Shown: positions 1,095 to 63,042, counted from the first letter of the stretch. The stretch: DNA of 64,000 bases from Macrostomum lignano (GCA_002269645.1 NIVC01001827.1:124001-188000), one strand, 5' to 3'. Translations and numbers: made by a program. Notes: a model not told the origin generated them from the letters alone.

Positions 1095-2630
1095 GATTGG
1101 TTGATTGATTGACGGCTGATTAATTGATTGATAGATTCACAACTTATTGATTGATTGATTCACAACTGACTGATTGATTGATTGATTCACAACTGACTGA
1201 TTGATTGATTGATTCACAACTGATTGATTGATTGATTGATTCACAACTGATTGATTGATTCACAACTGATTGATTGATTCACAACTGATTGATTGATTCA
1301 CAACTGACTGATTGATTGATTCACAACTGATTGATTGATTCACAACTGATTGATTGATTGATTCACAACTGACTGATTGATTGATTGATTCACAACTGAC
1401 TGATTGATTGATTGATTCACAACTGACTGATTGATTGATTGATTCACAACTGATTGATTGATTCACAACTGACTGATTGATTGATTCACAACTGACTGAT
1501 TGATTGATTCACAACTGACTGATTGATTGATTGATTCACAACTGATTGATTGATTCACAACTGACTGATTGATTGATTCACAACTGACTGATTGATTGAT
1601 TCACAACTGACTGATTGATTGATTGATTCACAACTGATTAATTGATTCACGACTGATTGATTGATTCACAACTGATTGATTGATTCACAACTGACTGACT
1701 GATTGATTGATTCACAACTGATTGATTGATTCACAACTGACTGACTGATTGATTGATTCACAACTGACTGACTGATTGATTGATTCACAACTGATTGATT
1801 GATTCACAACTGACTGACTGATTGATTGATTCACAACTGATTGATTGATTCATAACTGACTGATTGACTGATTCACAACTGACTGATTGATTCACAACTG
1901 ATTGATTGATTGATTCACAACTGACTGATTGATTGATTGATTCACAACTGACTGATTGATTGATTGATTCACAACTGATTGATTGATTCACAACTGATTG
2001 ATTGATTCACAACTGATTGATTGATTCACAACTGACTGATTGATTGATTCACAACTGATTGATTGATTCACAACTGATTGATTGATTGATTCACAACTGA
2101 CTGATTGATTGATTGATTCACAACTGACTGATTGATTGATTGATTCACAACTGACTGATTGATTGATTGATTCACAACTGATTGATTGATTCACAACTGA
2201 CTGATTGATTGATTCACAACTGACTGATTGATTGATTCACAACTGACTGATTGATTGATTGATTCACAACTGATTGATTGATTCACAACTGACTGATTGA
2301 TTGATTCACAACTGACTGATTGATTGATTCACAACTGACTGATTGATTGATTGATTCACAACTGATTAATTGATTCACGACTGATTGATTGATTCACAAC
2401 TGATTGATTGATTCACAACTGACTGACTGATTGATTGATTCACAACTGATTGATTGATTCACAACTGACTGACTGATTGATTGATTCACAACTGACTGAC
2501 TGATTGATTGATTCACAACTGATTGATTGATTCACAACTGACTGACTGATTGATTGATTCACAACTGATTGATTGATTCATAACTGACTGATTGACTGAT
2601 TCACAACTGACTGATTGATTAATTCACAAA
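1095..2630. repeat. Compound satellite of (GATT)n/(GACT)n blocks punctuated by CACAACT
   Basis: Directly visible tandem array, unit about 19-27 bp. The NQSISCES ORFs are artefacts of it. Confidence 0.95.
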
Positions 2631-4345
2631 AGGTAAAAATGATTTGGGATTAGTATTTGCAGTCAGAAGTTAATGCTGCGTGCAATATACCAGTAACTCT
2701 CAGCTGCAGGCAATTGAGCAATTATTAAATGTATGATGAAGTCTGCTATTGTGTTTCTGTCACAGGCTGTCAGTTCTGAAATTTGGCCAGCCTGTGTTTC
2801 ATTTATATTGAACATTTGCTCGCCTCATCCCAATTCCTCTGCAGCTATATGCATACATGCTACTTACTAGTAGCTGTACTAGTAGTATATGTAGCGCTAA
2901 ATTGCCTGGTGTTTCGTGGCAATTTTTTGCTTGTTATTTTTATTGTTAATTTGGCATGTTGAAGAATTGATAAAATATCGAAATCTGATTACTTATTTCA
3001 TCAGTAGCATCGTCAGTTAATTATTAAAAAAATTTTCTTAGAAACAAACCGGAATGCCGAATTGCTGTTTTTGTATGTAGCAATATTGTTTGAACTGAAA
3101 TTTGGAATAAATCATTATTTATTTTTGTTATCGATTGGTAACAACCTTGCCTACATGTATTGGCTTCAACTGTATTATGCATTAGCCAGCCCCTTTGACT
3201 TCGTATCCTAGGCAACAGCAATCTCTGGTTTTGTGTGTATCACTATATGCTCCATTTGCATAATTTTTTTTATTGTTTAATCCCGTTTGTACAGCATCTC
3301 ACTCATCATCTTGTGTACAGGTGTAGCAAGTTTTTGTTTGAAAGCATATTTTTAACAGAACCATTTTTTACAGGTTTCACTGGTCCTGTCTCTGTACAGT
3401 AGTATATAAGTAATCTTATTGTGCACCCCCCATAGCCCACTGTTTGGTTGCACTGCTCTGCATGATTCTCTCCGCTATATACGAACTTCATCAAGTCTGT
3501 CTACACGTGTCCCGCTTATATAGCAACTTATAACCTTAGTAATATTTTTATATTAAGAAATCGAAATTTCAAATATATACCATTTTTTCTCCTATTTAAG
3601 TGTGCACCAGTTGCTTTGCTGCTATCTCGACTGACAAAATTAGTCATTTATAATTGACAAATTATTAATGTTTCATTTACCTTTAAATTGTATTAACTGA
3701 CGACATATGAAGGTCAACACTCAAAGCACAGAAAGTTGTACAACTGCACATGCCTGACGATTAGACAGTCAGGGCTGCTGTACACCTTGTGTGAGCGTGT
3801 GTGTGAGTGCGTGACTGCGTACAGTAAGTGCTCAGGAGCCAGATTTGCCTCACTGCTGGTAATGCGCCTCAAGGATGCTTATTGCACCCTTGCAAATATC
3901 GCGGAAACCGCTACTCAAATATTACGAACTGGTCACTAGAAGTAGTATCTACTGCAGCCTCTGCAGCATTCCAACTGAAACTGTTCTGTCCTTAGCATGC
4001 TAAGTTTTGCAGTCAAAGCAAATCTGTTACTAAGCAGATAAGCGCCACTAGCTGGTCTTGCGCAGTGTTAGCTCTGGCTCTCTCTCTCCCTCTCTCTCTT
4101 AGCACTTGGTTTGGAGCGCACTGGCTTTATCCAACACGATTAAGAAACTCGGAAGCTATTCCGCCTGAGCATGTCAGGCTTGAGCTTGTTTATGCGAGCC
4201 GAGCCCGCCCCGCCAGGCACACGGATCCAATCTTATCAATTCTTGCTGTGCGAGAGGCCGCCCGCCAGTCGCAGGACTAAAAAAGCCGAGCTAAAAATGC
4301 TTAAAGCCCATGAATTCGGCAAATCTTCGCCCTTTTTGGTTCGGG

Positions 4346-4450
4346 CGTTGCCACCAGCTCCAAGCGATCGAGACTCTCAGAGCCCGCAGCTGAAGTCGCT
4401 GCCGCCAGCTCCAAGCGATCGAGACTCTCAGAGCCCGCAGCTGAAGTCGC
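4346..4450 (+). repeat. 51-bp tandem repeat upstream of the start codon (2 copies; about 2.5 copies in the paralog at about 59560-59700)
   Basis: GCCGCCAGCTCCAAGCGATCGAGACTCTCAGAGCCCGCAGCTGAAGTCGCT occurs twice; the same unit lies upstream of the minus-strand paralog. Confidence 0.9.
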
Positions 4451-4459
4451 TATTCAGCT

Positions 4460-7400
4460 ATGCCGCAATTGGTGAACCCAGCCGCCATTGCCGCACTCGC
4501 CGTCGTCGCCCTGACGCTGACGGCGGCCAGAGGGCAGCCGCAGCCGGTCGGAGAGGCCAATGTGACCATCGGAAGCTGCTCGATCGTCGGCTCCGAGTTC
4601 AATCTGACGATGCCCGACGGTCTCGGCAGCCGTCTGCTCCGCTTCCTGCGGGTGCCGTACGCCGAGCCGCCGGTCGGCGACAGGCGGTTCGCCAAGCCGC
4701 AGCCGTTCAACTTCAGTCGCTCCGACTGCCGGCTGACCGGCGAGGAGGCCGCTGACCCCGAGGAGAACTTGCTCCGCCTCAGCATTCGAACTCCCGACCT
4801 TGCCCCCGCTGATCCGCTGCCCGTCCTGGCGCTGCTGCTCGACGGCTCCTCCGACTTCAATGACAGCCTCGGTCACGAAGTCGGCGACGCTATCGGCACA
4901 AATGTCGTCATGGCAACCATCGGCAGTCGATTCGGCGTCCTTGGCAACGTGCCGGCAGGACAGAACAACGGCCTTGAGGATCAGCGCCTGGCGCTGGAGT
5001 TCCTGCGCGACCAGCTGCACCGATTCGGCGGCGACCCGGCGCGAGTGACGCTGGCCGGCCACGGCGCCGCCGCTGCCGCTGTCGGCCTGCACGCGGTTGG
5101 AAGCGGCGGATTCTCGCGCGTCGTCATGATGAGCGGCTCCATCGCCGCGCCGCTGGGCTGGTCGGCCTCCGCCGAAGTGGCCGCCGCCCTGGACCGCCAG
5201 CTGGCCGCCAGCCTGAGCTGCGGCATCGGAGATGAAGGCCGCCTGCCGCTCGACTGCCTGCGGAGCAAGCCGCTGAAGGACCTGCTGGATGCTGAGTCGC
5301 TGCTCCGGCGGGACTACGGCGACGGCGCTGGTCGGTTCGCGCCGTCCTTCAACGCCTCCTCGCTGCCGGACGCGCTTTGGCGCTCTGGCGCCTTCAACGG
5401 CTCCCTGATGGTCGGCGTCGGAACTGGCGTCGGCCCGGCGCTGGCGGAGCTGGCGCTTCGCGTGCAGGGCGCCGACTGGGGCGCGCTCGACCAGACGGCA
5501 TTTGAGACCGTGAGTGGCGCGCTGCTCTGAGCTGGGGCTGAGCTGAGCTCCCTGATCCCTTCATGCAGTGCCGTTCCAGCCATGCAGCTGCCTGACCCAC
5601 CTGGCCACTTTAGCTGTCACTCACCTAACCCACCTGGCCACTGCAGCTGTCACTTACCTGACCCACCTGGCCACTGCAGCTGTCACTCACCTGACCCACC
5701 TGGCCACTGCAGCTGTCATTCACCTGACCCACCTGGCCACTGTAGCTGTCACTCACCTGACCCACCTGGCCACTGCAGCTGTCACTCACCTGACCCACCT
5801 GGCCACTTTGCAGCTGTCACTCACCTGACCCACCTGGCCACTGCAGCTGCCACTCACCTGACCCACCTGGCCACTTTGCAGCTGCCACTCACCTGACCCA
5901 CCTGGCCACTTTGCAGCTGTCGCTCACCTGACCCACCTGGCCACTTTGCAGCTGTCACTCACCTGACCCACCTGGCCACTTTGCAGCTGTCACTCACCTG
6001 ACCCCCCTGGCCACTTTGCAGCTGTCACTCACCTGACCCACCTGGCCACTTTGCAGCTGCTAATCACCTGACCCACCTGGCCACTTTGCAGCTGCCACTC
6101 ACCTGACCCACCTGGCCACTTTGCAGATCCTGGACCGCGAGTTCGGCCAGTTTCCCCGCCTCCACTCGGCCGGCCGAAACGCCTCGGTCAGCGGGCGCCG
6201 CTACCTCCGGCTGACTCTGTCCGACTGGCCGCACTTCGCCTACGGCGGCCGCGTCCGCCAAATTTTGGCCCGCGCGCTGTCCGACTTTGGCGCCGTCTGT
6301 CCGGTTTGGGAGGCCGCCAACGACATGATTGGCTCAGGCCGGGTGTTCGTCTACCTGCACGATGAGGACGGAGATCCCGCAGCTACACTGTCGGTGGCGA
6401 ATGACGCGAAGGTGCTGCTGGGAGAGCCGCTGGTGCGAGCGAACTACTCAGCTGAGCACAGGAGCCTGTCCAGAATCATGATGCAGCACCTGGTCGATTT
6501 TACTGCTAGTGGAGGTGAGTTCTTCAGGCAGCTGTGTGATTGAAATGCCTGCTCAGAGTTGCTGCTTCAAATGCCTGGTCAGAGTTGCTGCTTCAAATGC
6601 CTGGTCAGAGCTGCTGCTTCAAATGCCTGCTCAGAGTTTCTGCTTCAAATGCCTGCTCAGAGTTTCTGCTTCAAATGCCTGCTCAGAGTTTCTGCTTCAA
6701 ATGCCTGCTCAGAGTTGCTGCTTCAAATGCCTGCTCAGAGTTGCTGCTACAAGAGCCGCTTTCATTGCCTCTTTCAGCTCCCAGTCCCGGCTGGCCCTCC
6801 AGCAGCGCCGGCGCCTTTGATTTCCTGCGCTTCGGCGCCAAAACCGGCGTCAATTCGACAAGCGGCGGCTTCGCCTTCGAGCCCGGCCGCTGTCCGCTCT
6901 GGTCGGCCGAGATGTCGCTGGCCAGCAACCTGTCCGCCTCGCCGCCTCCTCCGCAGCCGCCGCCGCCGCCTCCGCCAGCGCGAATCTCGCCAGGAGGTGC
7001 GCAGCCGTTCTCGAACACGGTGCTGCGGAACTACACCGTGAATATTCTCGGGCTGGGCAGGATGGTCGGCCAGACAATCCGCACCCCCGCTGGCAAAGTG
7101 ATGACGCAGTTTCTCGGCCTGCCCTACGCCAAGCCTCCCATCGGAGGGAAGCGCTTTGCTGTTCCGGAGCCGGCGGATGCGTTCGGTGAGCTGCCGCTAC
7201 CAGCCTCGAGTTCCGCATTGAGTCCCGCATTGAGTCACGTATTGAGTCCCGTATTGAGTCCCGCATTGAGTCCCGTATTGAGTCCCGTATTGAGTCCCGC
7301 ATTGAGTCCCGTATTGAGTCCCGTATTGAGTCCCGTATTGAGTCTTGGATTGAGTCCCGTATTGAGTCCCGCATTGAGTCCCGCATTGAGTCCCGTATTG

Positions 7401-10400
7401 AGTCCCGCATTGAGTCCCGCATTGAGTCACGCATTGAGTCCCGGATTGAGTCCCGGATTCCTGCATTGAGTCCCGCATTGAATCCCGCATTGAGTCCCGT
7501 ATTGAGTCCCGTATTGAGTCACGCATTGAGTCCCGCATTGAGTCCCGTATTGAGTCCCGTATTGAGTCCCGCATTGAGTCCCGCATTGAGTCCCGTATTG
7601 AGTCCCGCATTGAGTCCCGCATTGAGTCCCGTATTGAGTCCCGCATTGAGTCACGCATTGAGTCTCGGATTGAGTCCTGAATTCCCGCATTGAGTCCCGC
7701 ATTGAGTCCCGCATTGAGTCCCACATTGAGTCCTGCCCTAGCAACTCAGCGTTGATCCACGACCGACTTCCTTTTACCCTGCAGGCGAGGACTTCCTAGC
7801 GATAAGCCCGAAGCCCGCGTGTCCGCAGCCGGGGCCGCTCGCGACCTCCGAGGACTGCCTCTACCTGAACTTGTGGACACCCATGCACTCGGACCGGGAC
7901 GTCAATAACCTCCCCGTCTTGGTGTTCCTTCACGGCGGCTTCTTTCAGACTGGCGACGCCTTCGATGAGCGCTGGCGGGGCAGCCACGTGCTGGACCAGG
8001 TGGATGCGATGGTGGTGACGGTCGCCTACAGACTGGGTGAGTGGGTGAGGAGAGGGAGACGAGAGGGTGAGGAGAGGGTGGGGAGAGGGTGAGGAGTGGG
8101 TGAGGAGAGGGTGGAGTGGGTGAAGAGAGGGTGAGGAGAGGGTGGAGTGGGTGAAGAGAGGGTGAGGAGAGGGTGGAGTGGGTGAGGAGAGGGTGAAGAG
8201 AGGGTGAAGAGAGGGTGAGGAGAGGGTGGAGTGGGTGAGGAGAGGGTGAGGAGAGGATGAGGAGTGGATGAGGAGAGGGTGAGGAGAGGGTGAGGAGAGG
8301 GTGAGGAGAGGATGAGGAGTGGATGAGGAGAGGGTGAGGAGAGGGTGAGGAGAGTGTGAAGAGAGACTGAGAAGATGGTAAGTGAGGAGAGGGTTCTCAG
8401 GCCTTTGGTGGGCTGCAGCAGCAATGGAAGGTGATGGGATCTGAGGTGCTCCGGGCTGCAGTAGCAAAGGGGATCTTCCAGCTTCAGTCGCAATGCCTGC
8501 TGATTCCCAGGTGCTCTGGGCTTCCTGTGGCTGCAAAACGCCTCGGTGCCCGCAAACCTTGGCCTCCGAGACCAGGCGCTGGCCCTCCAGTGGGTGCGCT
8601 ACAACGTGCGCTTTTTTGGCGGCAGCCCCAGCAAAATCAGCCTGGTGGGCGCGGAGGCCGGCGCTGCCTCCGTCGGCTTCCACCTGCTGACGGAGCCGCG
8701 GCAGTTCCAGCGCGCCGTCCTTCTGTCGGGCTCGCCGAACTCCCCCTTCGCGGTGTCGCCAATGCCAGACGAAGTGCGGGCGATGCACGAAAATTTTACA
8801 GGTGAGACACCTGCAGATGCCCGTTTGCTTGCAGTTTAGGAGTACTTTGAGTACTGTGCTTGTGCTCAGCACAGTCCGCGCAAGTATTATCTGCCAGACT
8901 GCACAGGTGTCAGCTCATCCTCCCCTCCGACTCCTCAGCCAGCTACCTGAACTGCAGCCAGTCGGCCCCCGCTGAGCTGCTGGACTGCCTGCGCAACCTC
9001 ACCTCCTCGGAAATCGTCAGCGCGGCCGCAGACTTCCAGCGCGACGTCGCCGGCCTCCAGGCGCCCTTCGTCGCCTTCGGACCCGCCCTGGACGCCGACT
9101 TCCTGAAGTCCGACCCGTGGTCGGTGGACGCCTTGCCGCCGGTTCCGCTGCTGCTGGGCGGCGTGGACTTCCCCGGCAACACGCTGGTGCGGCTGCTGCT
9201 GCCCGATGGCCTGAACGTGACGCGAGACCGCGTGCTGGAGGTGAGGTGCACAGCACCTGGGCCAGTCACTGCTGAGTCCCGCACTCCTCTCACCTCCTAC
9301 AGCACCTGGCCCAGCCACTGCTGAGTCCCGCACTCCTCTCACCTCCCACAGCACCTGGGCCAGTCACTGCTGAGTCCCGCACTCCTCTCACCTCCTACAG
9401 CACCTGGGCCAGTCACTGCTGAGTCCCGCACTCCTCTCACCTCCTACAGCACCTGGGCCAGTCACTGCTGAGTCCCGCACTCCTCTCACCTCCTACAGCA
9501 CCTGGGCCAGTCACTGCTGAGTCCCGCACTCCTCTCACCACCCACAGCACCTGGCCCAGTCACTGCTGAGTCCCGCACTCCTCTCACCTCCCACAGCACC
9601 TGGGCCAGTCACTGCTGAGTCCCGCACTCCTCTCATCTCCCACAGCACCTGGCCCAGTCACTGCTGAGTCCCGCACTTCTCTCACCTCCCACAGCACCTG
9701 GGCCAGTCACTGCTGAGTCCCGCACTTCTCTCACCTCCCACAGCACCTGGGCAGTCACTTCTCTCACCACCCACAGCACCTGGGCAGTCACTCCTCTCAC
9801 CTCCCACAGCACCTGGGCCAGTCACTCCTCTCACCTCCCACAGCACCTGGCCCAGTCACTCCTCTCACCACCCACAGCACCTGGGCCAGTCACTCCTCTC
9901 ACCTTCCACAGCACCTGGGCCAGTCACTCCTCTCACCTCCCACAGCACCTGGGCCAGTCACTCCTCTCACCTTCCACAGCACCTGGGCCAGTCACTCCTC
10001 TCACCTTCCACAGCACCTGGGCCAGTCACTCATCTCACCACCCACAGCACCTGGGCCAGTCACTGCGCCACTTCCCCCGCTTCGGCGAGTCGCTGTCCTC
10101 GGTCGGACTGGAAGCCGCGAGTCGCCGCTTCGCCGAATTCCCCAGCTCGACCGCTGACGCCGGCGTCGGGGACGTCAAGGAGGCCCAGCTGCTGTCGCGG
10201 GCGCTGGGCGATCGGCACTTTACCTGTCCTACCTGGAGCTTCATGGCCAAAGCGGCTGCTTTGAGCACTGCTCAGGTTTTCGGCTTCCTGCTCGCCGAGC
10301 CGGCCGAGGAAATCGGGGATCGGCTGGTCGGCGCCAGCCTCTGTGAGCAGGCGGGGCTGAGGGGAGCGGGGAAGCCAGGCAGGTGGGATGAGCTCGCTCA

Positions 10401-11949
10401 GGTTAGCACTGAGGCACTGGTTAAACAGTGCAAATCGCCACTCACTGAAGTGCTCCAAAGCCCCGTCAACCGCTTAGCTCCCTCTCACTGAGGTGCTCCA
10501 AAGCCCCTCCAACCGCTTAGCTCCCACTCACTGAAGTGCTCCAAAGCCCCGTCAACCGCTTAGCTCCCTCTCACTGAGGTGCTCCAAATCCCCGTCAACC
10601 GCTTAGCTCCCACTCACTGAAGTGTCCAAAGCCCCGTCAACCGCTTAGCTCCCACCCACTGAAGTGCTCCAAAGCCCCGTCAACCGCTTAGCTCCCACTC
10701 ACTGAAGTGCTCCAAACCCCCCTCCCAACTGCTTAACTCCCACTCACTGAAGTGCTCCAAAGCCCCGTCAACCGCTTAGCTCCCACTCACTGAAGTGCTC
10801 CAAAGCCCCGTCAACCGCTTAGCTCCCACTCACTGAAGTGCTCCAAACCCCCCCCCCTCCCAACCGCTTAGCTCCCACTCACATAAGTGCTCCAAACCCC
10901 CCCTCCCAACCGCTTAACTCCCACTCACTGAAGTGCTCCAAACCCCCCTCCCAACTGCTTAACTCCCACTCACTGAAGTGCTCCAAAGCCCCGCCAACCG
11001 CTTAACTCCCTCTCACTGAAGTGCTCCAAGCCCCTCCAACCGCTTAACTCCCTCTCACTGAAGTGTCCAAAGCCCCTCCAACCGCTTAACTCCCACTCCA
11101 GCGGATGACGCCGTCTACGCCTTGGGCAGCCCTGCGAGACCCTCCAAGCCGCTTGGCGAGGCGCGCGCCCAACTGTCGGGCTTCCTCGTCCGCAGCCTCG
11201 TCGAGTTCGCCAACAGCGGCAACGTGAGCTGGGAGGCCTACGGGGCCGGAAGCCGGCGGGTGCTGCTGCTGCGCGACTCTGGAAGCGGCGGCTGGAACGT
11301 CAGCTGGCCGCCTCGCTACGTTGAGCACGCGCTCCGCGGACTGGACTGCGCCTTCTGGGACCAGACGCTGCCGTGCGTCGCCTCGCCTGACTGCATCAAC
11401 GACCTCCCTACGCCCTCGCCGACGACACCGACAGAAGCACCGACGGAGACACCAACGGCACCACAGACGGCGACGCCGCAGACGGAGATGACCGATTCTA
11501 CTGGAACACAGGTGACTGGCCAGTCAACTAATTATGACTCTACCTTGTCCTCAAGCTCTACAGGTCCCACCGATCATTCAGAAATCACTGACTCAACACC
11601 CGCACCTACTACACCTACTACTCCGATCCTCCCTTCCGAGACTCCGAACCCGGACGCAGGCGGCCTCGAAACCTGGGCAGTTGCACTCATTTTGGTCTTC
11701 TCCGTTGTCGGCGCTGGCCTGCTGATTGGCAGCGGCTTCTTGCTCTACAGGTGTTATTTTCGGAGTCAGTCAGATGGAGAGAACTTTCCGATGGAGTCAA
11801 ACTCTGGTAGAGCAAATCCACCAAAGAGGCAAGCAGGTCAGCAGCCACCGCCGCAGCAGCAGTATCGTCAGCATGAGCAGCCAGAAAATTATCTGCGTCA
11901 GTCGAGGCCGACTGAAGCCGGCAACAGCAACGGCGGATATACTGGCTGA
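4460..11949 (+). CDS. Type I membrane protein with two tandem non-catalytic carboxyl/cholinesterase-like domains, mucin-like stalk, TM helix and short tail (copy A, about 1277 aa, 8 exons)
   Basis: GT-AG exons with consistent phases: 4460-5509, 6127-6514, 6778-7185, 7785-8036, 8511-8801, 8939-9240, 10048-10342, 11102-11949. Signal peptide (AAIAALAVVALTLTAARG). COesterase motifs twice: RVPYAEPPVG/GLPYAKPPIG, NNGLEDQRLAL/NLGLRDQALAL, FGGDPARVTL/FGGSPSKISL, SEDCLYLNLW, FLHGG. Thr/Pro/Ser stalk; TM WAVALILVFSVVGAGLLIGSGFLLY. Confidence 0.85.
5580..6126. repeat. 33/35-bp minisatellite in intron 1 of copy A
   Basis: Unit CACTCACCTGACCCACCTGGCCACT(TT)GCAGCTGT; the last unit supplies the acceptor TTTGCAG. 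Confidence 0.95.
6540..6750. repeat. 26-bp minisatellite in intron 2 of copy A
   Basis: Unit CTTCAAATGCCTGCTCAGAGTTGCTG. Confidence 0.9.
7215..7735. repeat. 12-bp minisatellite in intron 3 of copy A
   Basis: Unit ATTGAGTCCCG(C/T). Confidence 0.95.
8037..8400. repeat. Purine-rich 11-bp-type repeat in intron 4 of copy A
   Basis: Unit GGGTGAGGAGA, starting at the donor G|GTGAGT. Confidence 0.9.
9245..10065. repeat. 49/34-bp minisatellite in intron 6 of copy A spanning the intron-exon junction
   Basis: Unit CTCACCTCCCACAG|CACCTGGGCCAGTCACT; exon 7 begins CACCTGGGCCAGTCACTGC at 10048. Confidence 0.95.
10430..11100. repeat. About 40-bp minisatellite in intron 7 of copy A
   Basis: Unit AACCGCTTA(A/G)CTCCCACTCACTGAAGTGCTCCAAAGCCCC. 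Confidence 0.95.
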
Positions 11950-12755: not shown

Positions 12756-15700
12756 TCACATTGGGCGATAAAAATCAGGAGGTCTTCGCTCTCTGGCCGA
12801 CCGTCTCGGCAGCTGAGCCTCTTGCTGATTGGTCTCGGTCGCTGTCTCATCCGGTCCGCCGTTACCGTCGAACAGCTGCACCCAGGCATCAGGCGCCTGG
12901 ACCTGAGGGTCCACCAGTCCGTCAGCAGTCTCGTCTGCGGTAGCCTGCAGGTCGTCGCCGGGCCGTAATGAGTTGCGCCGTTCCACAAATGGTTTGAGCC
13001 GGTCGTGGTGCACCACCTGCCTGCGTCGCATCCGCACGCCGGGACCCGAGGCCGGCCGCACTCGGTAGTTGACCTCGCCGAGCCTCTTCAGGATGATGTA
13101 CGGCCCGGTCCAGCGGATACTGAGGCTTTTTGATCTGCCAGGTTTCACCACCTTGCAGCTCAGCATCACCAAGTCGCCCTCTTTGTACGGCCGGAACCGA
13201 GTCTCCATGTTGTACCGCTCGTTGCGCTCGGTCTGCGACGCCTGCAGCTGCTGATGGACACGCGCCCGGCTGTCCAGCAGGCGCCTCTGAGTCGCCTCTG
13301 CAAAGTCCAGCGCATCAGTGAAGCCATCCGATGCTTTGGGCAGCTTGGAGTCGATTGGCAGCCTTGGTGGCCATCCGTGCAGCGTTTGGTACGGCGACAG
13401 GCCCGTGGTCGAGTGCACCGAGCTGTTGAAGGCCCACGTGACGAAGGCAAGTTGGAGGTCCCAGTCGTCCTGATCCTCTGCCACAACCGTCGCTAGCATG
13501 TCACCAAGGGTTCGGTTTCCGCGCTCAACCAGGCCGTTGCCGCTGGGATGGAAAGGGGAAGTGCGGCTTTTCTGCATGCCGAGCCGCTGGCACAGGGACT
13601 GGAACAGATGGCTTTCGAATTGACGCCCTTGGTCGCTGTGGATTGCGTCTGGGACGCCGTGCCGAAGCGCTACCTGCCTGACCAGAGCGTCGGCCACCCG
13701 CTCAGCCTCGATGCTTGGTAGAGCGCAGGTCTCCATCCACTTTGAGAAGCAGTCACAGATGCTCAGCACGTAACTGTTGCCTCGTGGTGTCCTTAGCAGC
13801 GGACCCTTGATATCGATCTGGACCATCTCCCATGGCCTCGACGGCAGTGGAGTCGCTTGCAGTGGTGCTCGCTGCGGCCGACTGCTGTTCTTCCGCCGAA
13901 GACAAGCGGCGCAGCTGGCGACCCAGTTCTTGACGTCGTTGTGCATGCCCGGCCACCAGCAGCGGTCGGCGAGCTTGTCCAGCGTTCGGTCTGTGCCGAG
14001 GTGACCGCTGCAGGCGGCGTCGTGCGCGTCAGCCAGGAACTGCGCACGCAGGTGACTGGGCACCACCGGTTTGCCCTGCCGGACCAGCTCACCGTGTTGC
14101 CCGATCTGGATGTCGCCATTTGCTAGGAATTCTTCGACTCGCTGCCGACAGCCTTTGGACAGGTGGACGAAGCCGTCACTGATCGCCTTGAAGACATTCT
14201 GCAGAAGGCTGTCTCGGAGCTGCTCTGCCAGGAAGTCATCGCGATTTGCCAGTTGAGTGACAGCCGTCCGACTGAGCACGTCTGGCACCACGTTCTCCCG
14301 CCCTGGCCGATAGCAGAGCGCGAAATTGAACTGCTGGATGGTGTCGAGCCAACGTGCCAGTCGACCCTCTGGCTCCTTGGTCTGCAGCAGGCCCTTGAGC
14401 GGCTGGTGATCGGTAAACACAGTGAAGTCTTTCACGTTGCACAGGTAGGCTCTGAAGTGCTTGAGACTCCAAACCAAGGCGAGCAGTTCCCTGTCAGTGG
14501 CCGAGTAATTTCGTTCCGCCTTGTTGAGGGTCCTGGAAGCAAATGCCACTGGAAGCTCCGCGTCTCCGTAACGCTGGCAGAGAACCGCACCCACTGCGAA
14601 GGCGCTGGCGTCGCAGCTCAGGACAAATGGTCGGCGGAAGTCCGGCAGGCGAAGCACAGGTGCTCGCCCAAGTTGCTCCTTGAGCGTCTGGAAGGCCGTC
14701 TCGCACTCGTCTGTCCAGGTGAAGCCCGTCTTCTGTGTTGCAGCATGCAGTGGTGCCGCTGTCTTGCTGAAGTCCCTGATGAATCTACGATAGAAGCACA
14801 ACATGCCGAGGAATCGTCGCACCTCCTCGGCAGAACTTGGTGACTGAATCTTGGCCAGGGCCTCCACTTTGTCCGGATCCGGCCGAATTCCTTCCCGGCT
14901 GACGATGTGGCCCAGGTACTTCACGCTCCTGTGAGCGAACACCGACTTGTCCTTGTTGAGCTTCAGTCCCGCAGCTCGCAGCCGGTCGAAAACTTTGCGC
15001 AGGCTGGCCAGATGCTCTTCGAAGCTCCGACTGAACACGATCAAGTCGTCCACGTAGACTAGCACCTCCTCCCAGGTCAGGCCGGACATAACGAGCTCCA
15101 TTAGCCTCTGGAAGGTCGCAGGAGAGTTGCACATACCGAAGCCCATCTTCTTGAACTGCATAAGGCCTCGTGTGGAATAGAAAGCAGTCTTGTAGCGGTC
15201 TGCCTCGTCGACCACGACCTGGTTGAACCCCTGCTTGCAGTCGATGGTGGTAAACCAAGAGCAGCCCGCCAGAGCATCCATCGATTGTTGCAGGTGCGGC
15301 AGGGGGTAGGCGTCCTTGATGGTCACAGCGTTCAACTGACGCCAGTCGGTGCATAGGCGGATGTCGCCGCTCTTTTTCCGGACGACGATAAGATTGCTGG
15401 CCCAGGGCGAGTTGGAAGGCTCAATGATGTCGTGCTCCAGCATCTGGCCGATTTTCTGGTCGACCTGGTCACGAACCGGCAGCGGAATCGGTCGCTGGCG
15501 CTGCTTGTAGGGCTGCGTGCCGGGCTGCAGCTCGATACGATGTTTCAGCAGCGCGGTGGAGCCGAGGTCGTACTCGTGAGTGCTGAACAGGTCACCGTTC
15601 GCCTTGAGTAGTGCCAGTAGTCTCTGCCTGTCAGCCGCATCCAAGTCAGGGTTGACATCCCAGCAGTCCGACTGCTTGACTGTGCCAGCGCTGTTGTTGA

Positions 15701-16517
15701 TCAGGTCGGCAGCTTCAAAAGAGCCGACGGCCTTGTTGGCGTAGAGTAGCACCTCCTCGGAGCCTAAATTGCACACCCGGACTGGAATCTTCTGATCAGC
15801 TGAAACGGTCAAAACTCTCGAGACAAGCAAACCAGTCGCTTGGGTAAAGTTGGCGTCGGGCTCGAAGATGCCTTGCTCGTCTTCCGACTTGACGCGGAGC
15901 CACACCAGCTTTTCGCTTCGTGCTGGAACACTTGTGTTGCTTTCCACTCGAGCAACGAGGGTGCCGGTCACCATTCGGACGCTTGAGCTGCTGTTGAAGA
16001 ACGGGACTTTCTCTCCGTTGAGGCATACGGTCCTACCAACGATGTCGATCTGAAGCTCTCGGGTGGTTCGGGTGATGAAGTCCATGCCGAGGATGAGATC
16101 CAGACTGATGTTCTCCACCACGTTGAGCTGATGGACAACCTTGACTGACTGGCCGACTTGAATTGTGGCTCGGGCAATCCCGATGCAACTCAGGCGGCCA
16201 CCATCGACCGAAGTCGGGCAGCAGCTTCCACCGGGCTCGATCTGAAGGCCGCAGACTTGCGCGAGGCTGCGGCTGATCAAGGATGTCTGTGCGCCAGTGT
16301 CGAGCAGGAAACTGACCTCCTTGCCTTGCAGAAGCGCACGCACGAAGATTGAGAGTGCAGATTGGGCACTTGATTGACGGGTAGGAGCTGGCCCTTCGCT
16401 GCCAACCCTCAGAAGTTTCCCGACGGCCGAGCCTTTGACGGGCAGACAGCCGCGCCGTGGCCCCAGCCGGAGCAGTTGAAGCAGCGACCTTGGCCCTGAG
16501 ATCCGCCAGCAGGGCAC
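12756..16517 (-). CDS. pol: Gypsy Pol: aspartic protease, reverse transcriptase, RNase H, integrase (probably expressed by -1 frameshift from gag)
   Basis: FLLDTGA (PR); RLCTDWRQLN and YVDDL (RT); LSCDAS...DHQPL (RH); H-H-C-C zinc finger, IDIKG/HSDQG/VERGNRTL (DDE IN); WTGPY (GPY/F). Uninterrupted 1253-codon ORF. Confidence 0.95.
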   Translation of the reverse strand: MPCWRISGPRSLLQLLRLGPRRGCLPVKGSAVGKLLRVGSEGPAPTRQSSAQSALSIFVRALLQGKEVSFLLDTGAQTSLISRSLAQVCGLQIEPGGSCCPTSVDGGRLSCIGIARATIQVGQSVKVVHQLNVVENISLDLILGMDFITRTTRELQIDIVGRTVCLNGEKVPFFNSSSSVRMVTGTLVARVESNTSVPARSEKLVWLRVKSEDEQGIFEPDANFTQATGLLVSRVLTVSADQKIPVRVCNLGSEEVLLYANKAVGSFEAADLINNSAGTVKQSDCWDVNPDLDAADRQRLLALLKANGDLFSTHEYDLGSTALLKHRIELQPGTQPYKQRQRPIPLPVRDQVDQKIGQMLEHDIIEPSNSPWASNLIVVRKKSGDIRLCTDWRQLNAVTIKDAYPLPHLQQSMDALAGCSWFTTIDCKQGFNQVVVDEADRYKTAFYSTRGLMQFKKMGFGMCNSPATFQRLMELVMSGLTWEEVLVYVDDLIVFSRSFEEHLASLRKVFDRLRAAGLKLNKDKSVFAHRSVKYLGHIVSREGIRPDPDKVEALAKIQSPSSAEEVRRFLGMLCFYRRFIRDFSKTAAPLHAATQKTGFTWTDECETAFQTLKEQLGRAPVLRLPDFRRPFVLSCDASAFAVGAVLCQRYGDAELPVAFASRTLNKAERNYSATDRELLALVWSLKHFRAYLCNVKDFTVFTDHQPLKGLLQTKEPEGRLARWLDTIQQFNFALCYRPGRENVVPDVLSRTAVTQLANRDDFLAEQLRDSLLQNVFKAISDGFVHLSKGCRQRVEEFLANGDIQIGQHGELVRQGKPVVPSHLRAQFLADAHDAACSGHLGTDRTLDKLADRCWWPGMHNDVKNWVASCAACLRRKNSSRPQRAPLQATPLPSRPWEMVQIDIKGPLLRTPRGNSYVLSICDCFSKWMETCALPSIEAERVADALVRQVALRHGVPDAIHSDQGRQFESHLFQSLCQRLGMQKSRTSPFHPSGNGLVERGNRTLGDMLATVVAEDQDDWDLQLAFVTWAFNSSVHSTTGLSPYQTLHGWPPRLPIDSKLPKASDGFTDALDFAEATQRRLLDSRARVHQQLQASQTERNERYNMETRFRPYKEGDLVMLSCKVVKPGRSKSLSIRWTGPYIILKRLGEVNYRVRPASGPGVRMRRRQVVHHDRLKPFVERRNSLRPGDDLQATADETADGLVDPQVQAPDAWVQLFDGNGGPDETATETNQQEAQLPRRSARERRPPDFYRPM

Positions 16518-17245
16518 CGGCGGGCGATGTGGCCTTCCTTACCGCACCGAAAGCAGCCTGATGACCGCTGCTGCTGATCTCTCGGCCTGCCGCCACCGCG
16601 TCCTCTCGCGCTGCCGCCCCTCGTCACCGCAGCCGTCAGGGTCTCCAGCTGCTGCTCCAGCCGTGCCAGTCGACCGTCAACCATCGCCACTGCGGGCGAG
16701 TTGCCTGGTTTGCATTTGCTCGCGATTTGCTCCAGCCTCGTGGCCCGCTCGACCAGCTCCTCCAGCGTGCAGGAGTCCAGGTCCCTGTCCTTGAGCAGGG
16801 TGTCACGTATGTCCGCAGTCATCAGCTGAATTATTCGAAATTTCACCTCACGATCTCGCAGCGCCGAGGAGTCATCAGGCCGTGCTGTCATGTACAGCAG
16901 CCTCAAGGAGTACGAAAGCTCTCGCAGGGTCTCTGCGCTGTTTCTCCGTCGATCTTGGAACTCTTCCATGGCGCGATGCTGGCTGGCTGCTCCGCCGAAC
17001 TGCTTTTGTAGCACCTCTTTTATCTTTTTGTAGCTTTTCCTATCAGCCTCCGGCAGATCCCAAACGCATATCTGGGCTTCACCATGCAGCAGGAGCTTCA
17101 GCTTCGAAGCAGATTGTGCGTCGTCCCAGCCTTTGTCCTCTACAAAGTCTTCGAAGACACTGAGCCATTTGTGCACGTTTGACTGGCCGGAGAATTTCGG
17201 CGGTAGCAAAGCAGCATTATTTTCACTTGTGTGAGTTGAGTCCAT
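16409..17245 (-). CDS. gag: Gypsy Gag with two CCHC zinc knuckles
   Basis: PPKFSG, a capsid-like helical region, CFRCGKEGHIARRC and CFNCSGWGHGAAVC. First ATG at about 17245 (MDSTHT). Confidence 0.9.
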   Translation of the reverse strand: MDSTHTSENNAALLPPKFSGQSNVHKWLSVFEDFVEDKGWDDAQSASKLKLLLHGEAQICVWDLPEADRKSYKKIKEVLQKQFGGAASQHRAMEEFQDRRRNSAETLRELSYSLRLLYMTARPDDSSALRDREVKFRIIQLMTADIRDTLLKDRDLDSCTLEELVERATRLEQIASKCKPGNSPAVAMVDGRLARLEQQLETLTAAVTRGGSARGRGGGRPRDQQQRSSGCFRCGKEGHIARRCPAGGSQGQGRCFNCSGWGHGAAVCPSKARPSGNF

Positions 17246-17257
17246 CGCTGCCACCAG

Positions 17258-17473: not shown

Positions 17474-18714
17474 GCTGTTTGCCCTGCATCATTGCAATTC
17501 CGTGATTAATTACACTTCCTCTTGCCGTGTGCATGTACACGTGAACTGGTGTAAAATTGGATGCACTGTTTATGAGTGTATTATTACTCTTTGACAATAT
17601 TTTTGGACTAAGCTCGTATAGGTTGAAATCATGAGGGACCAATCGGATTTTTTTTGAAATTTTCAGATACTTCAAGTTATAAAATAGTGAAAAAGGACAC
17701 CGCCAACATTTGAAGTCAAAGCCAACGCGCTTCGACACAAGCATGCAGTCAAGCAGCTTAAACAGCAAATAATTATATTTGAGTTAACCAGAAACTGTAC
17801 AGGGCAGTAGACAAAGTGTGCTCAGTCCCTATCGATAAATGCACAATCAGGTATGAAAACAGAGTAAACGGCCTACAATTCACTGAACTTAATTGGCAAA
17901 GAGATCGGTACGCAAACACTGAGTTTAGAAAATTTTGAGCTGCAAAATGGCTCATCCACCTGCAAGCTGCGCATTCAAACTATAGGCCTGTGATTTTGTG
18001 AAGCTTTACGAGCGTACGTCCTCATTCTTTTATATTTTTTGTTCAGCGAGCATCTCTACCTATAATTTTCTATTTCAAGTTAGATTTAGTTTATTTTTTT
18101 TAATAAAAGCAGCCTTATTTAAGAGTTTTGGACCATACATGTACATGCATATATGATATGAATATGATGATGCTCATGAAGTCAAGGACGACTTAAGTAG
18201 AAGGACGGGAAACCTCGTTTCTTAGAAAATTTTAGAAGGCAAGTTTTCCCGAAAAAATACGCTATGGAGATAAGAAGCAAACTTTTCGACTTGAAATTGT
18301 AAGAATGCTAGAGAAAAACTGACTGGTTGAATTCTGATTCTGAAATAGATTACATCACATAGGCTTTTTATTTATCGTCAGTGTACTGGCTGAATTTTGA
18401 CACTGAATTCAATTGCGTCACATGCAGTGTTGAAAACGTAGTGTGGAAGCATATAGCACAAGACTTGATTTAGATTGCGTAACCATATTGTCAACTTTAA
18501 TTGAGACTGACACTGACTTGCCTGAGAAATTGATTATGTCATAACTGCTTCGTGAGTGAGTGTTGAATTATAAAAGTGCTACAATTTCAAGAGCTAGTCT
18601 AGATGTGAACAGACTGGACTGCTAATGCAGCGACCTGGGTTCGATTCTTAGGAGTGGAAATTTTTTATTTTATGGAAAGCTTTTATTAAAGAATTTATAA
18701 AGGACTAAAGGTGT

Positions 18715-19575
18715 CATGTAAACAATCATTGAAGCGTCATGTAAACAATCATTGAAGCGTCATTTAAAAAATCCTAGAAACGTCATGTAAAAAAATCATA
18801 GAAGCGTTATGTAAAAATCATAGAAGCGTCATATAAAAATCATAGAAGCGTCATGTAAAAATCATAGGAGCGTCATGTAAACAATCATAGAAGCGTCATG
18901 TAAACAATCATAGAAGCGTCATGTAAACAATCATAGAAGCGTCATGTAAACAATCATAGAAACGTCATGTAAACAATCATAGAAGCGTCATGTAAAAAAA
19001 TCATAGAAGCGTCATATAAAAATCATAGAAGCGTCATGTAAAAATCATAGGAGCGTCATGTAAACAATCATAGAAGCGTCATGTAAACAATCATAGAAGC
19101 GTCATGTAAAAAATCATAGAAGCATCATGTAAAAATCATAGAAGCGTTATGTAAAAAATCATAGAAGCGTCATATAAAAATCATAGAAGCGTCATGTAAA
19201 CAATCATAGAAGCGTCATGTAAACAATCATAGAAGCGTCATGTAAAAAATCATAGGAGCGTCATGTAAACAATCATAGAAACGTCATGTAAAAAAATCAT
19301 AGAAGCGTCATGTAAACAATCATAGAAACGTCATGTAAAAAAATCATAGAAGCGTTATGTAAAAAATCATCGAAGCGTCATGTAAAAAATCATAGAAGCG
19401 TCATGTAAAAATCATAGAAGCGTCATGTAAACAATCATAGAAACGTCATGTAAACAATCATAGAAACGTCATGTAAAAAAATCATAGAAGCGTCATGTAA
19501 AAAATCATAGAAGCGTCATGTAAACAATCATAGAAGCGTCATGTAAAATGTCATAGAAGCGTCATCAAAAAATCA
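18715..19575. repeat. About 22-bp minisatellite
   Basis: Unit AATCATAGAAGCGTCATGTAAA(C/A). Confidence 0.95.
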
Positions 19576-20486
19576 TAGTAGCCTCTTATTAAAACTAATG
19601 GAAGTTTCATGTGAAAGTCAAAAGAAGTGTCATGTCAGACATGAAAGAAGTGTCATGTAAAAATTAAATGAAGCTATAGTGCTGTGCTGGGGAGAATTAC
19701 TGAGACGTCAAGCTAGGCTTTCAGAGAATAACTGAGTTTACGTGGGGGGGGGGGTTCTGAGATGTCAAAGCAAAAGTCAGAAGCTACTTCAAAGTACATG
19801 TAGTTTACTCAATTAAAATTTTTTATTTCATTCTTTTTTGGCTCGCCACGGGGGGCGCTGATAGAAGAAGAGTCATGTAAAAAAGAAAAGAAGCACTATG
19901 TATACATAAAAGAAGAGTCATGTCGAATTTTAAAGATTCATTTGGGAATTGCTACGATGTCAAGGCTTGGAGGGAATCGTTATAGTGCTGTGATTCTTAA
20001 AGAAGGAATCACTAAAATGTCAAGGCTTAGGGGAGAAGAATTGCTGAGATTTCAAGGCTTTAGTTTGGGTTAAAGTTAGGTTTAGGTCAGGTTTGGGTTG
20101 AGGTTTAGATTTTAGCGGGTTTCAAGGTTAACAGTGGATTTTTCAGATTCCAAGGTTTATGGGGGGGGGCATCGCTGACATGTCAAGGCTTACGGGGGGA
20201 ATAGCTGAGATGTCAAGGCTCACGGGGAAATAACTGCAGAGATGTCAAGGCTAAAGTCAGAAGCTACATGTAGTTTATTGAAAACTTTTTATTACATTAT
20301 TTGTTGCCTCCTCAGGGGAGGGATCGCTGATAGAAAAAGCGTAATGTAAAAAATAAAAGAAGCTTCATGTCGAAGTTAGGAGATTCATTTGGGAATCCCT
20401 ACGATATCGAGGCTTGCAGGGAATCAATATAATACTGTAGTAGTGCTATAATGACTCTTAGAGAGAATTACTGAAATTTCAATGCT

Positions 20487-24633: not shown

Positions 24634-25381
24634 TACAAGTAGCAATAGTATAAGGCTACTATTTATTAAGTAGATTTTTTTATTACATTTACCCCAATTG
24701 AAATTGACCTTACCTTACCTTTGATTGGGATTGGCCTAGTTATCCCAGCTCAATAGAATCCTCAATTATCCCAGCTAATTCTAGCATCCATTTTATAGCT
24801 GAATGCCTTCTTAACTCAGCTCTTAGTTCTTAGTTTAGTGTTTGAATACACACGGCAGTTGAATTTCTACTTCAAAAGCATTGCTATTGTAACTGGCATT
24901 ATTAGATACATGTGATTGAGCATTTTGATGACATCCAATTTCCTTCTGGTTTTCTGATTCTTGTCGGCTTAGCTGCAATAGTGTTTTTCCTTTGATCCGG
25001 GAGTATAACTTTCTAGTCTGGTCAATCTCGTTTTGTGAGCTCAGTCGCCCCCCTGAGTGCAACTCAGCCCGATAGTTTGTGTCGGCGTTAGATCAAAGAA
25101 AATTAACCCGCCAGTGTCTAACTCTGCTCCTCTGTACCTCCTAGTATTATTTACCTTTGATGCCGCCCGCCCCGTTTTATGATGGGGCCAGATCTTTGTG
25201 TACGCAAGGCCAGATTAGGAAGTCTGGCTAAAGCTTCAGTGTTGGTGCATTCTTTTTAACTGAAACTCCGACTCAGAACATTCCTAGATTAGATGGCATG
25301 ACTAAACGTTTAAAGCTGCATATCTGTCTTTCGGACTTGTCAAAATTATCTCAGTAATTTTTTTAATCTTCGTTGTCTATA

Positions 25382-25999
25382 GATAGTCATGCGGTTTGTG
25401 TTCTCAGCTCAGATAGTCATGCGGTTTGTGTTCTCAGCTCAGATAGTCATGCGGTTTCAGTTCTCAGCTCAGATAGTCATGCGATTTGTGTTCTCAGCTC
25501 AGATAGTCATGCGGTTTGTGTTCTCAGCTCAGATAGTCATGCGGTTTGTGTTCTCAGCTCAGATAGTCATGCGGTTTCAGTTCTCAGCTCAAATAGTCAT
25601 GCGGTTTGTGTTCTCAGCTCAGATAGTCATGCGGTTTCAGTTCTCAGCTCAGATAGTCATGCGGTTTCAGTTCTCAGCTCAGATAGTCATGCGGTTTCAG
25701 TTCTCAGCTCAGATAGTCATGCGGTTTTGTGTTCTCAGCTCAGATAGTCATGCGATTTGTGTTCTCAGCTCAGATAGTCATGCGGTTTGTGTTCTCAGCT
25801 CAGATAGTCATGCGGTTTGTGTTCTCAGCTCAGATAGTCATGCGGTTTCAGTTCTCAGCTCAAATAGTCATGCGGTTTCAGTTCTCAGCTCAGATAGTCA
25901 TGCGGTTTCAGTTCTCAGCTCAGATAGTCATGCGGTTTCAGTTCTCAGCTCAGATAGTCATGCGGTTTGTGTTCTCAGCTCAGATAGTCATGCGGTTTA
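25382..25999. repeat. 30-bp minisatellite
   Basis: Unit AGATAGTCATGCGGTTT(GT/CA)GTTCTCAGCTC; the SSDSHAVCVL/MRFVFSAQIV ORFs are artefacts. Confidence 0.95.
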
Positions 26000-38142: not shown

Positions 38143-47227
<9,085 letters not shown>

Positions 47228-61357: not shown

Positions 61358-61714
61358 ATTTAGATAAAAAGAGTTTTACTCTTAACCGACTGCCAGACAA
61401 CATTCATGCGTACTACTGGCGTCACTATTATTATTAAGTACTATTGTGCGAACATTTTATTAGCCGCGCGCAGTGAAGGTTTCGTTGAATCAGAAGACGC
61501 AATCGTTGGAACTGACACGGACGCAAAGATAAATAAACTGATATTTTTTATTACCTATGCCTTTCTTGCATGGTGCAGGAGACGGGAGCTCGACAAATTA
61601 TAAGGATGAGCAAGCCATTATTAAAATACTGTACTCCTATGTACATTTAACACAGAAAATATGTATTTGCTTCGATTTCACAAAAGCAAATCCGGTTCTG
61701 GGAGGTAGTGGCCC

Positions 61715-62995: not shown

Positions 62996-63042
62996 CAGTG
63001 GCTCAGCAACGATTCAAGGCAGGAGCCAGGAGATTCGGGCAG

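Follow-up and report, generated by a model that had tools for sequence, protein, structure and literature searches.

Cholinesterase (ChE)-fold proteins without catalytic activity are a classic case of enzymes turned into adhesion molecules, and to our knowledge every characterised member has a single such domain and works as a homodimer. These proteins act via surface binding patches and four-helix-bundle dimers (PMC5943944). Here we report a gene of the flatworm Macrostomum lignano whose predicted product carries two different ChE-like domains (D1 and D2), both apparently stripped of their active site, on one membrane-anchored chain. The gene is located at positions 4460-11949 (+) of a stretch of 64,000 nucleotides (GCA_002269645.1, NIVC01001827.1:124001-188000), which is called the window and to which all coordinates refer. 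The window also contains a second, inverted copy; the two are designated copy A (4460-11949) and copy B.

Copy A has eight coding exons with GT..AG at every intron; all donors are GT, and the acceptors of all junctions are a pyrimidine-rich ...AG. The joined frame of 3834 nucleotides (nt) runs from the ATG at 4460 to the TGA at 11947-11949 and encodes 1277 amino acids (aa) with no internal stops. The gene is GC-rich (0.60-0.64) and its flanks are AT-rich. Its exons are as follows (TM, transmembrane):

4460..5509 (+), exon 1, aa 1-350: signal peptide aa 1-25 (4460-4534), N-terminal two thirds of D1, predicted dead elbow GHGAA (5057-5071); from splice model, translation, hydropathy and ChE alignment, and identical to PAA63626.1/P0001
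6127..6514 (+), exon 2, aa 351-480: C-terminal part of D1 with the His-less segment ATLSVANDAKVLLG (6382-6423); the preceding intron is of phase 0 and at the same aligned position as D2 intron 6
6778..7185 (+), exon 3, aa 480-616: end of D1, poly-Pro linker SPPPPQPPPPPPPA (6939-6980) and start of D2, uninterrupted
7785..8036 (+), exon 4, aa 616-700: D2 with the HGGFF region of the oxyanion hole and, between C628 and C640, a short Cys loop of 11 residues
8511..8801 (+), exon 5, aa 700-797: D2 with the predicted dead nucleophile elbow GAEAG (8648-8662)
8939..9240 (+), exon 6, aa 797-897: D2 with the second disulfide pair, C802-C813, and the triad-acid position VDFPG (no Glu)
10048..10342 (+), exon 7, aa 898-996: D2; the first 17 nt are intron 6 minisatellite unit, and the acceptor choice agrees with P0001
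11102..11949 (+), exon 8, aa 996-1277: end of D2 (no His), C1078 pairing with C957, extra pair C1087/C1093, stalk (11404-11667), TM helix (11668-11748), 66-aa tail and stop

In the protein, the diagnostic motifs occupy aa 200-204 (GHGAA), 436-449 (ATLSVANDAKVLLG), 534-547 (SPPPPQPPPPPPPA), 746-750 (GAEAG) and 992-1004 (GASLSDDAVYALG; 10330-11127, across intron 7). The stalk part of exon 8 contains an optional in-frame, stop-free GT..AG intron of 129 nt, equivalent to 43 aa (11512-11640), the splicing of which yields nine exons.

The GenBank protein PAA63626.1 (BOX15_Mlig025559g1, 1234 aa), deposited as a hypothetical protein and labelled "Carboxylesterase type B domain-containing protein" in UniProt, is identical to the eight-exon model except that the optional 43-aa stalk intron is removed. 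The BOX15 GenBank models are TransDecoder open reading frames (ORFs) of RNA-seq-based, genome-guided transcripts (StringTie, TACO, de novo assembly), and the TBONE pipeline split transcripts at gene boundaries, as indicated by reads for trans-splicing or polyA (Wudarski et al. 2017; PMC5730564). This boundary cutting left D1 and D2 together in the transcript model of PAA63626.1. Because an RNA-seq-derived model matches the gene, D1 and D2 are on one mRNA; the D1-D2 gene is real and transcribed, as one gene with one mRNA.

Two adjacent single-domain genes could in principle have been misread as one fused model, since polycistronic, trans-spliced precursors occur in M. lignano (PMC5730564) and many database entries with several COesterase units look like fused tandem genes with a signal-peptide-like segment per unit (such as Lineus P0129). 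Here, however, exon 3 reads from D1 through the linker into D2 without a stop, so that joining the two domains requires no splicing at all. Moreover, D2 starts without a hydrophobic leader or a plausible Met with signal peptide, D1 has no stop, TM helix or anchor of its own, TBONE left the model whole, and the same arrangement is present in copy B and in a homeologous pair, all of which makes such a misreading most improbable. A first-pass annotation of this stretch had proposed one frame joining signal peptide, D1, poly-Pro linker, D2, stalk, TM helix and tail, and every one of these elements is present. Its view that D1 and D2 are joined by splicing of exons 2-3-4 needs correction, as the gene has eight (or nine) coding exons and the junction falls inside exon 3, and the two separate genes that it had named as the contrary outcome are not borne out by the transcript models, PAA63626.1 being whole across both domains.

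Both domains match Pfam family PF00135 (COesterase; gathering cut-off 27 bits, profile length 515), in which the first-pass annotation had anticipated two hits. D1 alone scores 159.4 bits (E 2.1e-46) over profile positions 24-487 and D2 alone 298 bits (E 2e-88) over positions 9-486, and by these scores both matches lie far beyond chance. The best sequence matches in the PDB (phmmer) are butyrylcholinesterases (BChE) and acetylcholinesterases (AChE), with E-values of 2e-52 over 513 residues for D2 and 2e-33 for D1, which is the more diverged domain of the two. Aligned directly with each other, the domains are 30% identical (E 1e-36). An AlphaFold2 model of D1 alone, based on a 102-sequence alignment, reached a mean predicted local distance difference test (pLDDT) of 84.6 and a predicted template-modelling score (pTM) of 0.90; Foldseek searches with this model had human AChE and BChE on top (template-modelling scores 0.78-0.82, E ~1e-31). 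In a two-domain run, D2 residues mostly had a pLDDT >90. In that run the alignment for D1 comprised only 2 sequences, MAFFT having placed the homologues on D2, and with a pLDDT <50 for D1 and <35 for the linker and a pTM of 0.63 it is uninformative on the packing of D1 against D2. All three ChE disulfides are kept in D2 (C628/C640, C802/C813, C957/C1078), while D1 keeps the second and third (C254/C266, C408/C518) without the omega-loop pair and has C40 and C90 instead. D1 and D2 are thus full-length COesterase domains with a predicted ChE-type alpha/beta-hydrolase fold.

The catalytic triad was read from three alignments, namely phmmer alignments to PDB chains, a MAFFT alignment with five ChE-family proteins, and a hidden Markov model (HMM) of our own, built from 56 triad-bearing ChE-like sequences, with which every domain was scored at the triad and cysteine columns. 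All three place Gly in D1 (GHGAA) and Glu in D2 (Glu748 of GAEAG) at the position of the nucleophile Ser. The acid of the triad (Glu) is replaced by Val in D1 and, with a one-residue shift between alignments, by Pro or Gly in D2; at the His position the aligners variously give Asn, Val or a gap for D1, and Leu for D2, and the translation has no His in the approximately 20 residues around the expected position in either domain. The oxyanion motif YGGGF is changed to DGSSD in D1 and HGGFF in D2. The omega (Cys) loop, which in AChE forms one wall of the gorge and bears the choline-binding Trp, is deleted together with both cysteines in D1 and is reduced in D2 to 11 residues versus 26 in the aligned ChE sequences. 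Both D1 and D2 are predicted to be CATALYTICALLY dead by the canonical mechanism. The first-pass annotation had already recognised the elbows without Ser and the lack of His in the expected regions (ATLSVANDAKVLLG and GASLSDDAVYALG); to these the missing acid of both domains can be added, and the modelling and triad inspection that it had suggested gave an AChE-like D1 and substitutions at all triad positions of both domains.

A non-canonical hydrolytic or other enzymatic activity might nevertheless reside in D1 and/or D2, with Glu748, for example, as an acid nucleophile. The alpha/beta-hydrolase fold tolerates an Asp nucleophile in dehalogenases and epoxide hydrolases, several unrelated COesterase proteins have Asp-Glu-His patterns, and the acidic residue at the nucleophile position of every D2-type unit of M. 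lignano is the one unexplained feature. However, His and acid are likewise replaced in D2 (by Leu and by Pro/Gly), D1 has Gly, Val and no His, the oxyanion motif is degraded in both (HGGFF and DGSSD), and the 20-residue segments around the expected site are devoid of His, so that residual catalysis would be very unlikely.

The membrane topology was called with sequence heuristics (hydropathy, sequon and Cys counts). Just two hydrophobic segments are found in the 1277 aa, one at aa 4-24 (signal peptide, with cleavage likely near TAARG/QPQ) and one at aa 1183-1211 (TM helix). In the ectodomain there are 14 Cys, an even number, and 18 N-X-S/T sequons, and the proline-rich linker between its domains belongs to a segment of about 40 residues predicted to be disordered. 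D2 is followed by the Cys pair C1087/C1093, an 88-aa stalk (59% Ser/Thr/Pro), the TM helix and a Pro/Gln-rich tail of 66 aa ending in NGGYTG. The predicted layout is that of a type-I single-pass surface glycoprotein.

The second copy was identified by tblastn and self-blastn:

59528-51613 (-), copy B, corresponding to PAA63630.1: exons 59528-58491, 58011-57624, 57353-56946, 56746-56495, 56155-55865, 55727-55426, 53290-52996 and 52634-51613

Copy B encodes 1331 aa with the same eight-exon structure, intact splice sites, identical dead-site motifs and a TM helix of its own. Its stalk is longer (185 aa versus 88 aa in copy A; 58-59% Ser/Thr/Pro in the two) and its tail shorter (25 aa, ending in WRQRHE, versus 66 aa). 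PAA63630.1 is on the same contig as PAA63626.1, and its homeologous model is PAA79327.1. The two copies form an inverted pair approximately 40 kb apart, and the same pairing seems to recur on the homeologous contig (PAA79323.1 with PAA79327.1). The stalks of both copies contain a stop-free, in-frame GT..AG intron, at 11512-11640 (+, 43 aa) in copy A and at 52053-51811 (-, 243 nt = 81 aa) in copy B, which is removed in PAA63626.1, PAA79323.1 and PAA63630.1 and retained in PAA79327.1. Splicing shortens the stalk from 88 to 45 aa in copy A and from 185 to 104 aa in copy B, and these introns look like an exitron-like switch for stalk length.

Across 4215-11477 (matching 59828-52259), the exons of the two copies are 97-99% and the introns about 92-95% identical. 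Past 11477 / 52259 the identity drops sharply, to about 73% in the DNA of the TM region, and the stalks and tails can barely be aligned. This sharp boundary suggests gene conversion between the inverted repeats, which would have homogenised the part from promoter to D2 (the 5' 7.3 kb) within an older duplication, with divergence of the membrane-proximal and cytoplasmic parts. The Nei-Gojobori estimates for A versus B, which rest on 24 synonymous and 28 non-synonymous changes, are 0.028 synonymous (dS) and 0.0115 non-synonymous (dN) substitutions per site with an omega (dN/dS) of 0.42 (D1 0.28, D2 0.47), values compatible with purifying selection over few events. All 18 N-glycosylation sequons, the disulfide cysteines (two of three pairs in D1, three of three in D2) and the splice sites are kept in both copies.

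Older relatives were sought by similarity search. A word-indexed search with the full-length protein returned only 5 M. lignano proteins, probably on account of low-complexity words, and was repeated with D2 alone and with an exhaustive HMMER search, which yielded three paralogues:

A0A1I8I8B3 (P0125), 1013 aa: 43% identical and collinear over both domains
A0A1I8G704 (P0124), 3380 aa: 37% identical, with alternating D1-type and D2-type units
A0A1I8F227 (P0133): a further M. lignano paralogue

All three have Gly at the nucleophile position of their D1-type units and Glu or Asp in their D2-type units, and several retain the His. From this shared pattern it follows that the losses of Ser are ancestral to the family and the losses of His in the window genes secondary. 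The two-domain module has persisted through deep divergence, apparently under long-term constraint, for which the older paralogues are stronger evidence than the dN/dS of A versus B. The cysteines, sequons and splice sites kept in the two copies, together with the D1 (Gly) and D2 (Glu/Asp) pattern kept at 37-43% identity, argue for a scaffold that is preserved around a dismantled active site, a fold maintained without catalysis.

The same data bear on the question of whether the locus is a decaying duplicate or pseudogene, or otherwise gives rise to no functional protein. All catalytic residues are lost, D1 is strongly diverged (159 bits versus 298 for D2), the region is rich in repeats and retroelements, and a third copy, PAA85785.1, is frameshifted in exon 4. 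Against decay, both window copies keep the 3.8-kb frame open over eight exons and have all 14 splice sites intact, dN/dS is below 1, cysteines and sequons are conserved, and the model is RNA-seq-based; the same dead residues in paralogues of 37-43% identity imply that the loss of catalysis is old and that the fold persisted afterwards. We regard a pseudogene as highly improbable. The third copy (P0399), on another contig, loses the reading frame after ...LYLNLWTP and stops at 688 aa, which points to either pseudogenisation or an indel in the assembly.

The origin of the module was addressed with a neighbour-joining tree of 59 individual domain units (485 HMM columns, 200 bootstraps). All M. 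lignano units, comprising the D1-type units, the D2-type units and two single-domain proteins, form one clade with 89% bootstrap support, within which D1-type and D2-type units fall into separate groups (strongest nodes 100% and 89%). In addition, D1 intron 1 (AFET|ILDR) and D2 intron 6 (RVLE|HLGQ) interrupt the same aligned residue, both in phase 0. The clade and the common phase-0 intron are moderately strong evidence that, within the Macrostomum lineage, a single-domain gene with introns underwent an internal tandem duplication and that the resulting two-domain module was then amplified.

The nearest neighbours of the M. lignano clade are a nematode group (60% for M. lignano plus nematodes), with the ChE clade next but unsupported. 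In the comparison with AChE and neuroligins that the first-pass annotation had recommended, the M. lignano units lie outside the ChE clade (97% support), and the M. lignano clade (89%) is apart from two amphioxus 'neuroligin-4-like' sequences, the sole neuroligin-like references, in a tree whose deep nodes are unsupported. P0060, automatically named 'neuroligin-4, X-linked', was tried as the source of neuroligin references and set aside as a mollusc esterase-like protein; it yielded the two amphioxus sequences and a few long insect proteins. Placement relative to the neuroligins is accordingly weak.

A flatworm neuroligin orthologue, a synaptic partner of neurexin with a duplicated ectodomain, would have the same general layout past the ChE-like part (O-glycosylated stalk, single TM helix, tail) and would likewise be non-catalytic. 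Neuroligin C-termini end in a class-I PDZ-binding motif. The tails of copies A and B, by contrast, end in ...GGYTG and ...RQRHE and hold no class-I PDZ ligand; there are two domains rather than one, cholinesterases, and no neuroligins, account for the top 60 PDB sequence matches, and the M. lignano clade groups with the nematodes and not with the amphioxus sequences. Such an orthology is highly unlikely.

In a survey of proteins with several COesterase units, covering the best 150 of 34,835 matches, most top scorers were predicted proteins with two to seven units. Some of these models resemble merged tandem genes with a signal-like segment per unit (for example Lineus P0129), and further multi-domain models come from a tunicate, a nemertean and bivalves. 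Six ambulacrarian models, all "uncharacterized proteins" in RefSeq, combine two COesterase domains with a C-terminal TM helix:

P0156: Lytechinus XP_054767789
P0168: Diadema XP_071500051
P0154: Acanthaster XP_022079595
P0165: Acanthaster XP_022100211
P0161: Saccoglossus XP_006825066
P0142: Glandiceps XP_077983973

Their second domain (d2) is predicted to be dead in all models, and the first (d1) has an intact triad in starfish and acorn worms; both are dead in the urchins (GEQ+GDF, GES+GDF). The ambulacrarian d1 and d2 form clades of their own (echinoderm d2 99%, ambulacrarian d2 64%, d1 42-59%), apparently the mark of an old two-domain gene in Ambulacraria that is unrelated to the duplication in Macrostomum. 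Since these clades stand apart from that of M. lignano, convergence would be a better description than orthology. The suggestion of the first-pass annotation that the architecture is lineage-specific therefore stands for the Macrostomum D1-D2 module itself, with its 89% clade and common intron, and falls for the general design, as two-domain COesterase models with a TM helix are also found in sea urchins, starfish and acorn worms. The predicted combination of two COesterase domains, one or both of them dead, and a TM helix is recurrent across phyla and not unique to Macrostomum. A phrase search of the available literature found no published description of tandem or double cholinesterase-like domains; the nature of the double dead-domain protein, its family and its convergent counterpart appear to be undescribed, the gene itself being already deposited. 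Among environmental sequences, a Tara Oceans contig (L001, 7319 bp) carries three complete COesterase domains at 1554-6435, on one strand and intron-poor, with one frame change in the second domain; Ser is present in its first two domains and His in the first.

By analogy with neuroligin, neurotactin, gliotactin, glutactin and the ChE-like (ChEL) domain of thyroglobulin, the D1-D2 protein is probably, though by no means certainly, a maintained non-catalytic double ChE scaffold that acts by binding, as a surface adhesion or receptor molecule with the ChE-fold surface as a platform for proteins or ligands. Each chain would present two non-equivalent binding modules, linked by the Pro-rich segment and held off the membrane by the mucin-like stalk, and copies A and B would offer a nearly identical ectodomain at different heights and with different cytoplasmic coupling (tails of 66 and 25 aa).

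The most elaborate form of this binding role would have D1 and D2 pack within one chain via the alpha3(7,8)/alpha10 four-helix bundle, which is the homodimer interface of AChE, neuroligin and thyroglobulin. The product would be a covalent, asymmetric pseudo-dimer with two non-equivalent faces; with at least two origins, one in Macrostomum and one in Ambulacraria, it would represent an unrecognised class of metazoan surface receptors. We offer this as a speculation that is unlikely to hold.

The features of the stalk and tail also allow for a more passive role, as a glycocalyx- or mucin-like coat (protective or anti-adhesive, on epidermis or gut) or as a sink for small hydrophobic or cationic molecules. 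The 18 N-glycosylation sequons, the stalks of 88 and 185 aa with 58-59% Ser/Thr/Pro, their variable length, further tuned by the optional in-frame intron, the short cytoplasmic tails, unconserved between the copies and devoid of recognisable motifs, and the amplified gene family would all fit. Two complete, disulfide-stabilised folds of 500 aa, kept in paralogues of 37-43% identity, would however be a costly coat, the characterised dead ChE-fold proteins have specific partners (PMC5943944), and the gorge elements for small ligands are lost, with the omega loop missing or shortened. A coat or sink is accordingly an explanation to be kept in mind but not expected; the pseudogene, the neuroligin orthologue and the fused gene model are improbable even when taken together.

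Several points weigh against a maintained, non-catalytic binding protein encoded by a module of Macrostomum origin. The transcript support comes from short-read assembly rather than full-length cDNA. The dN/dS of A versus B is derived from just 52 substitutions between copies that are apparently homogenised and reflects recent change only. The tree is a neighbour-joining tree of very divergent sequences with long branches and deep nodes without support, in which the Ala/Gly/Pro/Arg-rich composition of the M. lignano proteins could draw sequences together and inflate the species clade. The nucleophile position of D2 is Glu or Asp in all D2-type units, some paralogues retain the His, and other COesterase proteins show Asp-Glu-His, so that relatives of the D1-D2 gene may have an unconventional chemistry. 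Finally, no expression pattern, partner or phenotype was found in the literature, including M. lignano full texts and supplements, from which Mlig025559 is absent.

Minisatellites fill 75-100% of six of the seven introns of copy A, in the following arrays:

5591-6126: unit of 35 nt
6543-6752: unit of 26 nt
7208-7733: unit of 12 nt
8039-8394: unit of 11 nt
9249-10064: units of 49/34 nt
10438-11098: unit of 43 nt

Several units include a 3' splice-site motif (TTTGCAG, CCCACAG), and the intron 6 array extends 17 nt into exon 7; for these reasons the repeats seem to have grown by duplication of the intron-exon boundary. Copy B carries the same arrays with other copy numbers, and its intron 6 measures 2135 nt versus 807 nt in copy A. 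Upstream of copy A, a 51-bp unit is present in exactly two repeats (98% match) at 4349-4451, ending 9 nt before the start codon and inside the segment common to copy B.

The remaining features of the window are:

12756-17254 (-): apparently intact Ty3/gypsy-type retroelement directly 3' of copy A, with long open frames for Gag (zinc knuckle) and Pol (protease, reverse transcriptase, RNase H and integrase)
27717-28643 (+): ORF with an RGS domain (E 3e-14)
41015-46352 (-): fragmented LINE-like element with endonuclease, reverse transcriptase and RNase H ORFs
49410-50084 (+): ORF for a Cu/Zn superoxide dismutase (E 4e-42), with a hydrophobic N-terminal stretch and perhaps extracellular
1092-2629, 18713-19674, 25381-26002, 28714-29643, 33321-35111, 39706-40205 and 61694-62996: large tandem-repeat arrays outside the gene

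The retroelement, the RGS-domain ORF, the LINE-like element and the superoxide dismutase ORF are all located between copies A and B. Minisatellites and satellites are unusually abundant in the window, which fits the 15% of tandem and simple repeats reported for the M. lignano genome.

A family with two different dead domains per chain raises the question of whether tandem duplication replaces dimerisation and creates asymmetric binding surfaces. Some of its paralogues retain the His and others do not, and the D1-D2 family is thus a natural series for the upkeep of a fold after the loss of catalysis. The flatworm is genetically tractable (RNA interference, transgenesis), and echinoderms and hemichordates provide a convergent counterpart. 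In practical terms the gene is of modest importance, as no phenotype is linked to the deposited hypothetical protein.

Among known systems, AChE and BChE are nearest to the D1-D2 protein by sequence and predicted structure, and D2 shares their three disulfides and D1 the second and third. The D1-D2 protein differs from them in the replacement of all triad residues, a degraded oxyanion hole and a missing or short omega loop, and in its position outside the 97%-supported ChE clade. With thyroglobulin it shares a non-catalytic ChE-fold domain within a larger protein of the secretory pathway, the ChEL domain being a dimerisation and chaperone module (PMC5943944); thyroglobulin, however, is a secreted vertebrate hormone precursor with one C-terminal ChEL domain, whereas the flatworm gene encodes a predicted membrane protein with two N-terminal domains. 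The ambulacrarian models likewise have two COesterase domains and a C-terminal TM helix, and those of Lytechinus and Glandiceps an N-terminal hydrophobic segment, but the third ChE disulfide is missing from them, and the Lytechinus model has a much shorter stalk and tail. In function, the nearest systems would be the ChE-like adhesion molecules. Neuroligin, neurotactin, gliotactin and glutactin have in common with the D1-D2 protein a ChE-fold ectodomain without a functional triad, membrane anchoring and glycosylation (family description in PMC5943944), and neuroligin and gliotactin also the type I orientation with stalk, single TM helix and cytoplasmic tail. Unlike these ChE-like adhesion molecules, which have one domain, the M. 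lignano protein is predicted to present two in tandem, with the omega loop absent or truncated and a C-terminus that is not of the PDZ type.

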